The translations under genes and the position numbers were made by a program. The notes beneath the pieces are model-generated. The model did no database searches. It was not told the DNA's origin and saw only the letters and a program-made list of their open reading frames with translations. A stretch of 63,938 bases of DNA, filler included, from Lenisia limosa (taxonomy: Eukaryota > Protista > Breviatea): assembly GCA_001655205.1 (NCBI GenBank). It is 13 parts of 13 records of this genome, joined end to end, with 100 filler letters (N's around TTAATTAATTAA, not from the genome) between each part and the next. Parts side by side here need not be neighbours in the genome. Positions count along the whole stretch, not along the records: positions 47,791 to 56,673 come from LPNZ01000879.1; 12 more parts are not named here. One strand, given 5' to 3'. This document shows positions 47,677 through 56,773 of the stretch, piece by piece (position 1 is the first letter of the stretch; every line of letters starts with the position of its first letter).

Positions 47677-48000
47677 CTGGGGGGGGGGGGNNNNNNNNNN
47701 NNNNNNNNNNNNNNNNNNNNNNNNNNNNNNNNNNTTAATTAATTAANNNNNNNNNNNNNNNNNNNNNNNNNNNNNNNNNNNNNNNNNNNNGAAGGACCTA
47801 CCACCTGCACCTCCACCAGTGGACGTCGAAGGACCTACCACCTGCACCTCGGGGTCACGTCTGGGGGAGGGAGGGAGGTGCAGCCTTTTCCTGGCTTCAT
47901 AAGTGTGACTAGTTGAGAGAAAGTCTTCGAAAAAGACGTATTCAGGATATTAGCGAAGACATTTGCTACTTTTTGAGGAATGAACATTAACGTCCACCAG

Positions 48001-50823
48001 GGGATGTCAGCCCTCAACGGAATTCCGACCGGAGGGCAATTCCTTCTTGATGCCATTTTGAACGAGTGAGCATTGGGTTGTAAAAACGTCTTCTTTTTCT
48101 CCTGATTGGCGAGTTTTACAAAATTTGCATACCTTTCTGACTATTTTAGTTTGATCGATTACGATGAGTAAGCAACTTGGGAGTACGTATGATATGTTGC
48201 AATTGAGCTGTTGCCTACTTTTATTTTCATTTCGAATATCATCCTTGGATCTATCTAGAATTTCAGCATTTTGTGGTATCTAGGGCTTCACCCGGGTACG
48301 AAATAGATCGCTGAACTCTCGACATATACATATAGTATATTATTATATTATGTAGATATTATATCGATAATTTATCAAGAAATTCCCTCACTGGATTGGA
48401 GTGAAGCCTTAGTGGTATCGCAGGAAGACCTGCTGATTTTTTACTCAAGTCACCACCAATATTTTTGTTGTTCTCAACCTTCGTTGATTTTGGTTTTTTT
48501 TTTTTTTTTTTTTTTCCCCAAAAAAATCCTATTTTACTCCCCAAGATTCCTCAATGGATCGCGAAACGAGGCCCAGTTCAGTTCATTCAGTACCACGATT
48601 CCGAAAATGGTGTCTATTCCAGCCCAAGCCATTCCTCTCGGTATGCTGGGGAGGTATGCAGAAAGCTGTGTGCTCAGAGTTGTAAGGCAAATGTCTGGGT
48701 TTGTCCGCAATATTGACCATTTCATTTTTCCTCATACATCAGCCATAATCTCTGCAATTGGATTTGTACCCTCGGAAGATGGGGTTTACCAGGACCAGAC
48801 GGACTCCGTACAGCAGGCAATCCGAATTATGTTTGTTGTCGTCCCAACGATATGCACTTTTTCGGGTTGGTGGTTTGTTTCTTGTTCACTGCATGCAATT
48901 TGTTAACAAGGGATTTACTGTTCTCAAAATGAGCCATTTTAATACCAATAGGGGGATTGTCTTTTTTTTGAACAAAATTTTCCTATCTTGAATATATGAT
49001 ATGATATATTATATATATAGTTATGTATGATAGTTAGGATCTGTCGTGAGTAGTACTATTCATTGAGGAGGGGCTTCAGTGACCATCTTCACTCGTTTCT
49101 TTCGTTGTTTATCATCTACCTAATAACCATTTCAGCCTTTTTGGTGAAGCTCAAGTTCCCCATCAAGACTCAACGTGGAGGGGGGGGGGAGGACGGATAA
49201 CCTATTAATATATTGATATAATATAATATACTATATAATATCATATCATTTACTATTATATTACTTGTGTGTTATAGTTATTTGTTATATCAGAATCTGA
49301 TTTCCAGCCACTGTCCGTTATAATGCATTGGTCTCTTCGCTTATCCTCAGATCAATAAGGTTCCTTTTGGATTGACGAACTCAGAGATTGTGGAGGTCAT
49401 CATGACTGGAGTACAGGCCCATATGAACGACCTTGGTTATGAGGACCCTATCACCGGCGAGTAGTGGGAGGGTATCTTGCCCTTGTAGATAGGATGTTTT
49501 ATATTTTGTCTTTCATCTTTCCTTTTTGTTCACAAAACTGGCACGTTTTCGTGTTTGTGTTTTGGTCATTGTACCTCAACTGAGAGATCTAAAGAGCTAA
49601 TTCTCGATAAATTGGTAACCGGTAATGCGAATGATATCAAAGTCTTTTGTTGAACCCAGATTACTGACAACTAACACTGACAGTATTGAGCTCCTGAAGC
49701 TCTCTCAGAAGGAACAGGACTACGCTAATCGCCTCGACAACTTCGCTTGGAAGTGCGCGGGGGGGGGGGGCATTAAAGAAATGGNNNNNNNNNNNNNNNN
49801 NNNNNNNNNNNNNNNNNNNNNNNNNNNNNNNNNNNNNNNNNNNNNNNNNNNTCAGTCGAGACGCCTCCTTCCTAGTCAAACGCATCCGAGGCATGATTGT
49901 CCTCACTGTCATCATGTTCATTCTCTTCGTCACTACTGTTGTCTTTACTTTCAGGTAGGGGTGTTTTTGAGCACTGATTGTATTTAGTTTTTTTATCACA
50001 TATTTGAGCCAGTAATTAACACTTGCACATGTAGTAAATATTATTGTTCATACATTTGGAGAAGTCACAGATATCCGCTGTTTTGTACTGGATGCAACCA
50101 TGTGATATTTTAGATTCCTGTCCGACCCTGCCTTGGCATGGGTACCCTCATTTGCTGTTATCAGTGCAGGTAAGGGGCTAACATCTTACCAGGTGGTATT
50201 TGTATTGATATAGATGAAAGTTTCCTCTCTCACAAAGTAATGAAACTGAAGAATTGTCAGATCTCATCTTGTTCTTTCCATTTGCTTTTCATAGCAGTGG
50301 AATCTGAGTATGATATGTAGCTTGTAGTATATGATATCATGTGAAATACTAGTAGACTATTTGCATACAAATGATACAATATTAACGATCCAAACCATCT
50401 TGACTGTCCTTCAGGCCTCTGCATGACGGCGACGGCTATAAACACTCTGCGTCTCATGGCTGCAAAGAACCTCAAGAAAGACCCTCCTCCAACCGACCTT
50501 GTCAGGTTTGTTCCTGAATGGTAGAGATAAGAGGGTCAGGTAATGAGATTCAGTGATGGGGACGTCTTGATCTATTTTCCTTGGGAAATCACATAGCAAA
50601 TCGGTCAAGACTTATCGCGGTCACTGTATTATTCGAAGTTAGATGGAGGACTGAATGATGGTGGTGAAGTAGATGAGATTAGTCTACACATTTGCCTTCA
50701 CGATTCTAGACGGATTGTCCAGCATAAGACCAAGGGACAGAGAGGTGGAAGTTTGATCTTTGATCAGAATCTCATTTCCAGCTGGAAGGAGAAGGAGGTT
50801 GAAACGGCATATGAAACGGATTA
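48001..50823 (+). CDS. MFS transporter, glycoside-pentoside-hexuronide (GPH/MFS_2) family, C-terminal half with extension
   Basis: GQFLLDAILNDLIDYDEFLNGSRNEAQFSSF...AIGFVP...QTDSVQQAIRIMFVVVP (DxxDYDExxxGxRxE motif); exons from 48001-48065, 48150-48167, 48546-48640 and 48741 onward. Confidence 0.85.
48281..48411. mobile_element. hAT-like MITE with perfect 8-bp TSD and an internal AT-rich insertion
   Basis: GTGGTATC (48273-48280) - TAGGGCTTCAC...GTGAAGCCTTA - GTGGTATC (48412-48419). Confidence 0.88.
50551..50628. mobile_element. Tc1/mariner-like MITE
   Basis: CAGTGA...CTTATCGCGGTCACTG-TA; same 76-bp length as the copy at 27838-27913. Confidence 0.65.
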
Positions 50824-51369
50824 CGTAAGCGGTGCAAACTTGCCTTTTATGGAAACTCATTGTTTTATACTTTTGGTAAAAAAATTTGTTTTGAAATGCA
50901 CGGGGAGAACATTATTATGGGTCCCATTCAACGCATTTCTTATCAATCGTCCAGGACACCATGTATAAGAGTTGCCATGCGAAGGAGTTTTCTAGTGGAA
51001 TGGACTTGGGTGGCTCGGAGTCGGAACTGAGATCAATTGATCATGTGGGGAGGGGGGGGGGATCCAAGATAATTGTATATATCTAAGAGATGAGGGGGGT
51101 AAAGGAGAATGTATAGGGGAGGTATAATTGCATCAAAGGGGCACTTTTAGGTGACACTTGATTTGTAATTGATTCGTGACTCATTTTCTGACTTATTAGC
51201 CCGGGGCAGGGGTACATGAGGATGAAGTTTAGTTTATAAATGTTTTCGTAAAAATGTATTTTTGACATCACAAGATAAGGAAATACACAGAAGAAACAGA
51301 CTCAAACTAAACATCTTATGAATATCTCAATAATAGACAATAATAATAACTTATAATGCTCTTATTCAT

Positions 51370-54300
51370 TCACAAAGTACCATATGTTCCCGCAGTCTGC
51401 GAGTACAGCAGCGACTTTTTTGTAGAGCTCCACAGATGAGCGTTGGGCTAAAATTGTTGTTAGTTTCCAGCTCAAAAACTATGGCCTAAAGAGGCATTTA
51501 GCTATTTTTTGGCGAGATTGGGTGATTGGAAGAGTTACTCTGACAGGAGGATGATTTTGTCCATTTGCCCAATTAAAAATCAATACCTGTCTTGTTTTGG
51601 CATTGGTACTCCCCCCCCCCCCNNNNNNNNNNNNNNNNNNNNNNNNNNNNNNNNNNNNNNNNNNNNNNNNNNNNNNNNNNNNNNNNNNNNNNNNNNNNNN
51701 NNNNNNNNNNNAAATCGCAGCGTCGGCTTCGTTTCATCTAAAAGTTACTGTGAAGACTAATTTTAATTATGATTTGTGCCTTTCGTCCCATAAGCATATG
51801 TAGCAATGAGAAATTAAAAATAAGGTATAATAATCTAATATTAATTCACCCATTCATTTGCCAACCTGCTGTGGTGGACGACAGAGTCTTGCTCAAAACT
51901 AAAAACAGTCATAAACATAGGATGAAGGCCGTGGGCTTTATGAAACACATTAGTGGTAATCTAAGAAAGACCATGAATTGGAAGTGAATATGGGAAAGTC
52001 CATTCTATCGGCAAACTCTTCTCCCTGCAAAGCTCATCATAGTCTAGTACGCTCTTGTGGTACAGGTTCTCCAGAAGGAGACGACATACCCAAAAAGGTG
52101 ACCTTCGCAGTCATTAGAGCCAACAATAACTGGGCAGAAGTGTTTAAGGTCGTAGTGGTGATTGATGATGGTGAATGAACGTAGTAGATACTATGATGAT
52201 GTCGTGGAAGTAGTGACTATGATGTATGTATGCTGTGAGAAAATGTTAGCTGTTCACACAATTCATGCAAGTGAATACTGCATTTTATCACTCTTGTTAA
52301 ACTGCACTTTCGATACTCTGATGATCTACTGACCAACAGCCAGCAAACCGCAAGCGGCAATGATGTTAATATAGCATTAAACTTACATTTTATCTTGCTT
52401 CTTCAGTTGGAAAAGAGTAATGTCACCCTAAAGAGATGAAAAATACCCTATTACAAGAGATTTAATGGATATTTTTATCTTCCAAAAAAGAATATAGCGG
52501 AGGAAAATAATTCCAAAATAGCTAAAAACAGGAACCCCACCAAGTGCTTCAGTTTCTTCACGGTTGGGGAGTCACAGACAATAGAGTCGTTCGGACTAAT
52601 GCCCTCGAGACAATTTGCTCGTATTGTCGCTTCGCCCCACTAGACATGAGAAATCACACATGAATGGTGAATCATATCAATTCAACAGTGTGGTGTGTTT
52701 TAAGAAGTTAGTTCTGTAGGAACAGTACCATGAGATAACGAGGTCTTATTGTGTCGATAATGCCTGATACTGCTTGACCAGTTGACACTCCCATTCGAAC
52801 GTGAAAATCTGCGAAGTTTTTTGAATGGTCAAACAATGAACCGATATTTATTACACTAGTTTTGGGTATTGTGTCCACATTTGACCCCCTATTGAAGAGG
52901 ACGCTTACCAAAGCTTTTTGCTCTCTCTTGGAGGCGCCAGCTCTGCAATAGTTACAATTTGGGACGAATATTGCAATTTGTTTATGATTCAATTTAGCTT
53001 GTTCTAAGCAGTTTTTGATTTGCGCTTACAATTAAAGACAGGTTTGCCTGAATATGCATGGCAAGATCAACTGTTGCTGACTGGAAAATTATATTAATTT
53101 CCATGAAATCTTCGAACATTGATACCATATGATACCTTATATATATTTATATAACATGACACCTTATGTATTTTATAACATGATACCTTATGTATATAGT
53201 ATAATCATATGATATACTATCATGATAGGGTACAAGAAAATGCCACGGATTATCCAACAGATGGATTTGGGGAGGTGTCTTCTGTGAGGGCAGCCTTGGG
53301 AGTTAAAGGAAACCAAATGCGAAGTCAATAATGATGGAATGATATGAGGATGCCTGGATACCAAAGGTGTGGATCTTTGGCGTAACCCAATGATAGAAGA
53401 AATAAATCGAAAAGTTGAAATCATGAACAAACAACACAGTGTTACATCGATTCGAATATCACCACGATAAGGTATTCTCAAGAAGTTTTCGGTCTAATAG
53501 AAAAGCACCATCAACCCCACCAACCACCCAACAATCGCCAATTGTGTACAATCGATTGCATTCACTTTCTTCGCACAAGGCATCAAATTGCCCAACTAAT
53601 ATATTAGTATTGTTAATGGATTGAAATTCACTTAGGCCAGAAACATAATCAAGTTTGATTTTTGTTGGTAATCATGGGAGCACCAACTTATTATTTTGAG
53701 ACATTCAAACAGAATGTTTGTGGGGAGATGAGAGGCTGTGTAGGTGTAATTCACCAGATCAATCTAAAGAGTCATTTGTGTTTTATCAATGCATACTGAT
53801 CAGGGTTTGACTTCAGTTTCAAAAATTTGATGTAATTGATGTTTCTTTGGGAATGATAAACTCTTATATAGCAAAAAAGTCAAGCCTATTATCTTTGCAA
53901 TTTGATCACTACCCCAATACTCTGCACCAGTCTCTTTCCCATTTACCTGAAGAATGGATGTTTCGAAAAATTCGTTCATTAGTCGCTCAGAGTTCAGCAG
54001 TCGTGTAATGACTGTTGTGGAAAATAAGTCTCTTCAACTTGTTTTATAATGACACAAACCCCCCATCCTTTACCCTTTTCAATAACACCAACAACCTTAT
54101 TTCAGTCTCAACTCCAAGCAGATCCCATTTACCAGAAGAAGGCACAAGGCTTCCCATGCACTTTGACAGAATTGCTTGCCTCTTCTCCTGCAGCTTCTGA
54201 AGGAATGACACAAAATAGATCAAGTAGCTATATCATATATTATTTATACCATATCGACATATACATGCACTACATTTATACATGTGTACCCCATTTGTCA

Positions 54301-55430
54301 TCACAAAGCTTCAAAAAAGAAATATTATTATCAAGAGATTTAACGTTCTTGTTCCGATAGGGCACTTACAACAGAAAGAAACAACTCCCGTGATTCTCGT
54401 TCAGTTCGGTAGGCGATCTGTACGGCAAACGCCAAATGGAATATGAGGATAAGGAGTCGTAAGCAGATGAACTGGCTGTTTTGATAAATGAACATTTTTG
54501 ACACAATATCAAGGATTATTTGAAATTATTGAAGTACCATTTAGAGTAGTTTTTTTTAAAAAAAAATGAAAACTGGACTTGACTAGTCCCTACATTTGAA
54601 CACCGACATAGAAGGAAGCGGCACAATGATACGTCAGTATTAATAGAGCCGTCACCAATCTGACACATTACTCGCTTGCGAAGACTACACTGGCTTACGA
54701 GTGCTTGAACATAATGTTTCCATTCATAAAATGAGCGACGAAAAGCATCAGTGTGTCAGCAAGGAAGTAGTCCTGTCTAGAGCTGTCATAGGTGCGTGAA
54801 AACCCCCAATAAAGTCATTTGACTGATTAGCAATCTTGCTGATAACACTTACTCCAAAATAGCATCTCCATCCCAAGGTGAAGCGTGGAGCAAACATATT
54901 ATTGACACGAAGGGATGGATGAAGCAGATGAGTCTGAAGATGAAAAGGACCATGGTCACCAACTTTCTTAAAGGGTTGAGTATGATGAGGAATAAATCAA
55001 GAATGAGAGATAAAGTAGCGATTTTTGTAACCATAAGTCGACTCTGAAAAGTGAATAATATGTCCAGACTACCTCTGATGCAGGCATAAATGGGGCTTGA
55101 TTATATCTAAAACCTTGTTAGACACCAATTATACGAGAAACTTACTTCACGAACAAGAGCAATGAGACTGCAATAAACGCAGTAAGGCACCCAAGTAACT
55201 GCATATTCTGAGAGAATAATCAATAACATTTCTATGCCTACTCTATGGTCTTTGACAATCCATTTATTGGTGAACTCTCGTTCAAAGCTTCCAATCTGTG
55301 GACAGTATAATTGATTATGTACAAGTAAATGGCTTATCATTTGTTCAGATCCTCCTACGCTAGTTTGAACCAATTCTGATTCCATTCCGACAAAATCCGA
55401 TACTTTAGCACTGTGTTGAACTTTTGTGAA
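51370..55430 (-). CDS. Membrane class III adenylyl/guanylyl cyclase-like protein (TM cluster + one C1-type catalytic domain); probably extends upstream to about 56600
   Basis: Hydrophobic exons at 54700-55230, then IAYRTERESRELFLSV / KLQEKRQAILSKCMGSLVP / ...FETSILQ|IDLVNYTYTASHLP...IGQFDALCEESECNRLYTIGDCWV|AALTEDTSPNPS|SATVDLAM...FHVRMGVSTGQAVSGIIDTIRPRYLM|WGEATIRANCLEG (exons incl. 53763-53688, 52808-52729, 52639-52562). The lower boundary is approximate. Confidence 0.85.
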
Positions 55431-56773
55431 GGAAAGAAACCTGAATGTTAATATCATCTGAAGTTATTGTAATACACTATAGCTTGTGTAATACAAAACA
55501 TTACCACTGAAATATATACATATCATATCATCAAATATGGTGCGACTAGTTAGATACACGATATTTTATCTTTTCAGTATCAGTTTCAGCATGTCCTACA
55601 GTTGGTGTATTCCAACACTGAGCAAAGAGAAGACCTAAACAGTCAGTTCATTTCAAATAAGCCTTTTCGGTTAAAATTATCCAGAAATTGTATTACGAGG
55701 ATTCAAACAGTTATTTACCAATGGCAGAAAATGGAAAACAGCATCACAAACCTCTTCCATATGAAAGCCCTTTTCATCCATGTTCTGTCTACATTGGTCA
55801 TATATTTCTTATTTTTTTTCAACTTACTGTCTTAAGCGAGTGCCAATTTCATTAAGTATTTCGATTTGGCCATTATAATGGGCAAAGAGATCAGGCGAGC
55901 TTAAAGGTATGAATCTTCAATATTCAAACTCACAATCTATCGGGGACTTGCGGTTTGCTTTTTGTTGGTTGAAAAAGACAATTGGTCATTTTTTGGATCT
56001 AAAACCAGTCAGATTACATTTCGTTGCTTACTGAAGGCTTTTTCTTTGAAGTCACAGGACCTGATTGGGTTACTCTCAAAAATGCTATCAATTCACACTT
56101 TACTTAACGGACTGGCTTTCGGTTTCTGATACCCAAACAATTAAATCGATATTTTCCCTATGATAAACACTAATTTATTTAGGAGCGAAAATTTGTAATG
56201 GTACCTTAGCCAGAACCAGTGGGCGGAATCATACCCTCCAAAAGACCGTTTAATCTTCAAAGCCCGCCACCAACTAGTATTGGGCGACAGCTTTGGAGTA
56301 TGTTCAAGGACCTCCATTAATGCGTCGTCAGCTTCAGATTGGCACTTCCAGACAGGAATCTGTCCAACTCCTTTGGCGTTCACCTTCGATTGTTATTGGA
56401 TCCTGCGTAACAGAATCAGCATGTTGTTTTTAGCCCAGATGTGCTCCGGTAGTGTTTGTTTTAATAAAATTGAGACATATTACAATATTAAAACTATTGC
56501 ATTACGTTTATCATGTCACCAACATACATATGATTCAAATTCCGCAGTCCAACTGCTGTGGTCAACTGTAACATTGATGTCAAGTTGTTGCCTACAAAGG
56601 TAAAGACACTATTAAACAATCTATTGAACTAACAGTATACTATAGTATATGATATATATATATATATATATATNNNNNNNNNNNNNNNNNNNNNNNNNNN
56701 NNNNNNNNNNNNNNNNNTTAATTAATTAANNNNNNNNNNNNNNNNNNNNNNNNNNNNNNNNNNNNNNNNNNNN

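Follow-up and report, generated by a model that had tools for sequence, protein, structure and literature searches.

A candidate C1-type half of a membrane adenylyl cyclase, encoded by a possibly free-standing gene in the breviate protist Lenisia limosa

A stretch of 63,938 nucleotides from the protist Lenisia limosa (assembly GCA_001655205.1), here called the window, includes at positions 47791-56673 the contig LPNZ01000879.1, and on the minus strand of that contig lies a gene predicted to encode a membrane-anchored cyclase with a single class III catalytic domain. The predicted order of the protein is an N-terminus of about 100 residues, six helices, a transducer-like linker and then that one domain. 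By its residue pattern the domain is a C1 half or, in the terms of soluble guanylate cyclase, an alpha-type half, and the reading placed first here is that the gene is complete as it stands and specifies half of a membrane cyclase which would require a complementary partner. That reading is a tentative one, given a little less than even weight. The DNA of the contig is eukaryotic in character, being AT-rich (about 38% GC) with many short exons, and every bacterial-style open frame in it is shorter than 170 residues.

How secure is the cyclase assignment, and to which half does the domain correspond? Pfam and PDB searches were run on single exons, the spliced form being used only for the frame check, for hydropathy and for one local blastp comparison. 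The cyclase homology domain, delimited by PF00211, PDB and blastp matches, occupies exons 9-16 of the gene model (52387-54011, minus strand). Two single exon frames match PF00211 with E values of 9e-4 and 3e-3, at 19.3 and 17.6 bits and so under the cut-off of 21.9, and the spliced domain aligns over 166 residues, with 32% identity and an E value of 4e-21, to the cyclase domain of a Rhizobium plasmid (L004:2144-2770). Judged on these matches, the class III cyclase domain signal is far above chance. In the PDB search exon 11 finds AC9 C1 at E 5e-5 (16 identities in 29 residues), the C2 domain of the same chain scoring about 0. Its weaker matches are to AC5 C1 and to the catalytic domains of soluble guanylate cyclase alpha-1/alpha-3 (E 0.2-1.1); the AC9 and AC5 C1 domains and the guanylate cyclase alpha chain are all metal-binding halves. 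Exon 14 aligns, at E 0.12 in the same type of search, to the RxGxxxGxxxxGxxG region of AC2 C2; a word search with its frame gave zero candidates, and a protein atlas consulted with two exon frames gave no usable match.

The catalytic positions were assigned from the Rhizobium alignment together with the canonical spacings. Both metal-binding aspartates are in place, D324 within QIDLVNYT (53758-53760) and D368 within LYTIGDCW (53534-53536), all positions in this paragraph being on the minus strand. The four remaining catalytic positions are substituted: the base-specifying Lys/Glu position is Tyr 364 (53548-53546), in the same LYTIGDCW motif; the specificity Asp position is Leu 428 (52734-52732), in RYLMW; and the transition-state Asn and Arg positions are Ile 435 (52624-52622) and Cys 439 (52612-52610), both in ATIRANC. 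Arg 424 (52746-52744), three residues ahead of Tyr 427 in RPRY, aligns with an Arg of the bacterial domain. The spacings are canonical, with 44 residues from Asp to Asp, the Tyr four before D368, seven from Leu to Ile and four from Ile to Cys, and the motifs quoted in the first-pass annotation, with their two metal aspartates and the Tyr, Leu, Ile and Cys substitutions, were all recovered there. Class III cyclase domains with the residue pattern of C1 or alpha form no active site with a copy of themselves. For the protein predicted here a homodimer would have no complete active site, since the domain has neither the base-specifying pair nor the Asn and Arg of the transition state. If, as we infer, the protein has any catalytic activity, it would most likely come from pairing with a partner domain: the proposal is a head-to-tail arrangement with a separately encoded cyclase domain that would supply Lys/Asp (or Glu/Cys), Asn and Arg, the pair forming one active site per dimer as C1-C2 and alpha-beta pairs do.

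The linker that joins helix 6 to the catalytic domain (53947-54196, minus strand) has a transducer-element-like centre, S-L-V-P, at 54151-54140. In membrane cyclases this centre is invariantly SxL/MP ahead of C1 and NxLP ahead of C2 (PMC9552081). The Ser and Pro of SLVP agree with the former and Val stands in place of Leu/Met; the agreement is partial, and SLVP is nearer to the serine form found ahead of C1 than to the asparagine form found ahead of C2. The serine type of the linker centre, the residue pattern of the domain and the match to AC9 C1 together point to the identity of a first half (M1-C1), and argue against the last half of an enzyme with swapped domains. Upstream of the linker, the membrane block (exons 3-7, 54370-55420, minus strand) has about six predicted hydrophobic helices, at residues ~100-265, with hydropathy peaks of 1.5-2.35 (Kyte-Doolittle, 19-residue window) and a FEREF-type motif ahead of the first helix; none of its exon frames matches a Pfam family.

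The gene model, model A, was chained by hand, with GT..AG introns, from a three-frame reading of the minus strand. It runs from 55781 to 51362 with 17 exons and 1536 coding bases, for 511 codons followed by a TAA stop at 51364-51362. Exons 1-6 are at 55781-55719, 55617-55560, 55420-55146, 55043-54853, 54776-54699 and 54659-54594; exons 7-12 at 54475-54370, 54196-54133, 54011-53947, 53763-53688, 53595-53516 and 53080-53030; and exons 13-17 at 52942-52909, 52808-52729, 52639-52541, 52427-52387 and 51470-51362. A scripted frame check found every junction to be GT..AG and in frame, with zero internal stops. The donors are mainly GTAAGT, GTAAAT or GTAAGC, and the introns are of 39-183 bases except for one of 435 and one of 875. 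The first-pass annotation had placed the gene at 51370-55430, an extent that has to be widened to that of the model. We infer the exact exon chain and the stop used from frame and splice signals, the least certain parts being the first two exons with the true start, the 53516/53080 junction (exon 11 to exon 12, with a weak donor, GTTGAT) and the last exon. Ahead of the proposed start there are further open frames with splice signals, up to 56392.

For the last exon there are two candidates. That of model A (51362-51470, minus strand) joins exon 16 in frame through the acceptor TTTTTGAG and ends ...VAAVLADCGNIWYFVNE*; from its pattern it might represent the final beta hairpin of the cyclase domain. 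That of model B (52044-52190, minus strand) joins exon 15 in phase 0 and reads YLLRSF...FCPVIVGSNDCEGHLFGYVVSFW...AY*. Whichever is taken, and equally if exon 15 or exon 16 is simply read through, the protein stops after one cyclase domain, and past the last exon all three frames meet stops between ~51395 and 51362. The in-frame model needs an intron of just 39 bases within the membrane block (54698-54660, minus strand, GTAAGC...CAG). Upstream of the proposed start two further candidate introns of 34-39 bases are seen, at 55828-55790 and ~55932-55899, and a class of very short introns may exist beside the usual ones of 90-180 bases. The 435-base intron holds a 24-base tandem repeat.

Could the missing half be hidden in the assembly gap that interrupts the contig? 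A second assembly of the locus, with no N, is available as ENA ERZ3820729 NODE_1982 (hereafter L001; 8877 bases, coverage 28.8), the one public contig with an exact match to the protein P0001, the open frame of one exon of this contig. By blastn, L001 38-4999 corresponds to window 56673-51712 and L001 5048-6818 to window 51622-49852, in both cases with 100% identity, though the two assemblies may derive from the same reads. With flanks thus identical, the 89 N at 51623-51711, a gap whose closing had been proposed at the outset, are replaced by 48 real bases (L001 5000-5047). These contain no cyclase exon, and an open frame of 74 residues running through them finds no Pfam family. In model A the gap falls inside an intron, so the reading frame need not carry on through it.

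Beyond the cyclase exons, the 3.6 kb downstream to the contig end is occupied by a convergent gene on the plus strand. From exon 16 to that end there are 76 same-strand frames of 20 residues or more; none of them matches PF00211 (E<=10) or is helix-like, and tblastn of the bacterial cyclase domain against the contig finds only exons of the one cyclase domain. All frames stop by 51362, and on the 8.9 kb contig these searches detect neither a further membrane block nor a C2 domain with which the protein could continue. The earlier description, a membrane block and C1-type domain with no second cyclase motif nearby, is thus borne out, both by those frames and by the gap. Its estimate of 1.5-2 kb to the convergent gene is not: with the last exon of model A beyond the gap, the two convergent stop codons are only ~280 bases apart. 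It is because of this proximity, together with introns of at most 875 bases and no downstream exon candidates, that an end of the gene here is favoured.

Against a complete gene for a working half, several findings have to be set. The contig is only 8.9 kb long and ends in repeats, so that the gene may continue off it. The search for further exons has limited reach, as Pfam sees about two of the six exons of the known domain and a C2 domain split among exons could escape it. A possible GTGAAT donor occurs four codons ahead of the stop. The 3′ end is ambiguous between models A and B, and Pfam and PDB lend support to neither last exon. As to the protein itself, the GFT of the phosphate loop reads NYT and C1-type function may itself be impaired, several exons of the domain are very divergent and have no PDB match, and a 118-residue membrane-exon frame found no relative in an exhaustive search of 1.84 billion representatives, which returned only P0001, the frame of the contig itself, and two repetitive false positives.

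Some of these points are what would be expected were the gene the first half, M1-C1a, of a 12-helix two-domain cyclase, its C1b-M2-C2 exons being beyond the opposite-strand gene or off the contig, or the contig being mis-joined. The shortness of the contig, its repeat ends and the GTGAAT hexamer are all compatible with such a continuation, as are the closeness of exon 11 to animal AC9 C1 and the pre-C1 type of the linker centre, and M2-C2 comes after C1 in every membrane cyclase that PMC9552081 describes. For this, however, an entire gene would have to sit within one intron of over 3.6 kb, where the other introns are of 39-875 bases; since 15 of the 16 are of 435 bases or less, such an intron would be an outlier. 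Nor does the downstream sequence have a C1b-like open frame, a helix-like frame or a PF00211 match, and the layout is the same in two assemblies, though with reads that may be shared. On balance a first half of a longer gene is considered quite unlikely.

Other points in the same set bear on whether the protein catalyses anything. An obligate heterodimer with a C2-type subunit and a regulatory pseudo-enzyme, the two possibilities raised in the first-pass annotation, would both fit the residues. A rival reading gives the protein no catalytic role: it would be either such a pseudo-enzyme, acting as a sensor in the membrane or as a dominant-negative partner in dimers, or a truncated duplicate of a full-length cyclase drifting towards a pseudogene. 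Four of the six catalytic residues are lost, the altered phosphate loop adds to this, neither the beginning of the domain nor its tail finds a match in PDB or Pfam, and the domain is five residues short between D368 and the Leu 428 position. Against this, all 17 exons are open with their splice sites intact, and the residues that are kept, the two aspartates and Arg 424, are exactly those that a C1-type subunit needs. Such a pattern is what a functioning subunit of a heterodimer would show, and not what decay at random would leave, and a non-catalytic protein is regarded as unlikely, though with an appreciable share of the probability.

In Dictyostelium GCA and the guanylate cyclases of alveolates the two domains are swapped, so that the second bears the metal aspartates. 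Could the gene be the C-terminal half of a 12-helix enzyme of that kind, with its first half upstream and off the contig? The stop does come almost directly after the domain, as in C2 domains, and with the start codon uncertain there are the open frames with splice signals that extend up to 56392. Yet in the 930 bases upstream none of 17 same-strand frames matches PF00211 (E<=10), and the largest has a fibronectin-III-like strand pattern, itself not significant, with no in-frame chain to the cyclase exons. Both the linker centre and exon 11 are, moreover, of C1 type. This arrangement is judged very improbable.

The complete gene for a C1-type half, to return to it, would specify a protein of about 510 residues with a short cytosolic N-terminus, six helices and a helical linker; its one catalytic domain would belong to class IIIa and be of the same type as C1, or as the alpha subunit of soluble guanylate cyclase, and the stop would come a few codons past the domain end. 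How does this compare with known systems? With M1-C1a of animal AC9 and AC5 it would share the six helices and the helical linker with its serine-type centre followed by the domain, and, as in their C1, both metal aspartates are kept and the Asn/Arg pair is absent. The differences from the animal enzymes are that the frame here stops right past the domain, with no C1b, M2 or C2 on the contig, that the membrane exon has no detectable relative and that the phosphate loop is altered.

Cya (Rv1625c) of Mycobacterium tuberculosis consists of one hexahelical anchor and one class IIIa domain (PMC9433096, PMC9552081). According to hydropathy and the exon model, the predicted Lenisia protein has that same overall layout, one six-helix anchor and then one catalytic domain. 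Rv1625c differs in having all six catalytic residues and being active as a homodimer, while the base-specifying and transition-state residues which such self-sufficiency needs in the same domain are those replaced here by Tyr 364, Leu 428, Ile 435 and Cys 439. Guo et al. in 2001 reportedly engineered complementary mutants of Rv1625c, and it is one of these, rather than the wild type, that the Lenisia protein resembles. Should it be part of a heterodimer, it would also be like soluble guanylate cyclase alpha, in being the separately encoded metal-binding half of a heterodimeric site, with the weak match of exon 11 as a further likeness. Alpha, however, is soluble, with H-NOX, PAS and coiled-coil regions in place of a six-helix anchor, and has a known beta partner, whereas the partner here is postulated.

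Three other resemblances met with in the searches were discarded. The frame ...LIFNWANGQNHPPVRVTLPIT... at the closed gap, with an N-x-A...P-x-x-I-x-V-S-like pattern, had looked like the remnant of a second cyclase, and on closing of the gap it proved to be without a Pfam match and without a tblastn match to a bacterial cyclase domain. An upstream candidate for a cyclase tail, IFESNPIRSCDFKEKAF (tblastn E 0.47), has no cyclase signal in Pfam or PDB. Scans of metagenome and prokaryote contigs with P0001 brought up only GC-rich actinobacterial nitrate-reductase loci, which share the string DHRVGIEM by chance.

The convergent multi-exon gene (47977-51086, plus strand) runs off the left contig end, and its probable last exon, 50955-51086, is defined by a GTAAGC donor at 50827 and a CAG acceptor at 50954. 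It had been called an MFS gene; one of its exons has a weak match to MFS_2 (PF13347), at E 0.057 and profile positions 379-419 of 427. As the left contig end cuts the gene, only the final part of the MFS_2 domain is visible (48598-48870, plus strand). The exons past it add another two or three segments that are hydrophobic, e.g., RDASFLVKRIRGMIVLTVIMFILFVTTVVFTF, and such a hydrophobic C-terminal extension is unusual for the MFS_2 transporter family.

On the other side of the cyclase gene, the 83-residue same-strand frame at 56392-56144 (minus strand; L001 319-567), with a possible ATG at 56317, reads ...TPKLSPNTSWWRALKIKRSFGGYDSAHWFW..., and its only PDB matches are to the final strands in a fibronectin type III domain, at a non-significant E of 1.4. 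It has a splice-compatible next exon at 56079-56025 and no in-frame chain to the cyclase exons, and it may end a neighbouring gene on the same strand, only ~20-230 bases from the cyclase start.

As for the contig itself, it has a TA microsatellite at one end and a 37-base tandem repeat at the other, and because of these repeats the assembly stops there; apart from them, Rfam, tRNA and tandem-repeat scans of the contig revealed nothing relevant. A second assembly gap, at 49786-49851, is of 34 bases in L001. Runs of 10-13 G or C and one of ~24 T occur at 51611-51622, 49759-49770, 51052-51062, 49180-49191 and 48494-48517; they adjoin both gaps and are also within exons of the plus-strand gene. 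One G run is of 13 in L001 and 12 in the window, and errors in homopolymer length could cause local frame shifts. Similar AT-rich stretches of low complexity, with TATA, CATATG and GATATC words, are found in introns of both the cyclase and the plus-strand genes, for instance at 53197-53129 (L001 3514-3582) and 49320-49280 (L001 7391-7431) and in several further introns.

What would a free-standing half mean? Soluble guanylate cyclase is a familiar case of complementary halves with a gene each, and bacteria are well known to have six-helix cyclases with a single domain. For a natural split of a membrane adenylyl cyclase no description was found in the searchable literature. That the Lenisia gene is one part of such an enzyme, with M1-C1 and M2-C2 halves from separate genes forming an obligate heterodimer, is an unlikely but not negligible proposition. 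The origin proposed for membrane adenylyl cyclases is a six-helix homodimer of bacteria that was duplicated and fused, C1 and C2 becoming specialised only later (PMC9552081). A natural split would either have survived as an intermediate on the way from that homodimer to the 12-helix fusion, or have come about later by fission of the fused gene. Were the gene to be part of a longer one, or a dead remnant, it would be ordinary. If it is what it may be, a free-standing eukaryotic half already specialised as C1, then asymmetry is possible without covalent linkage, and Lenisia would offer a natural system for how two membrane anchors and two catalytic halves find each other.

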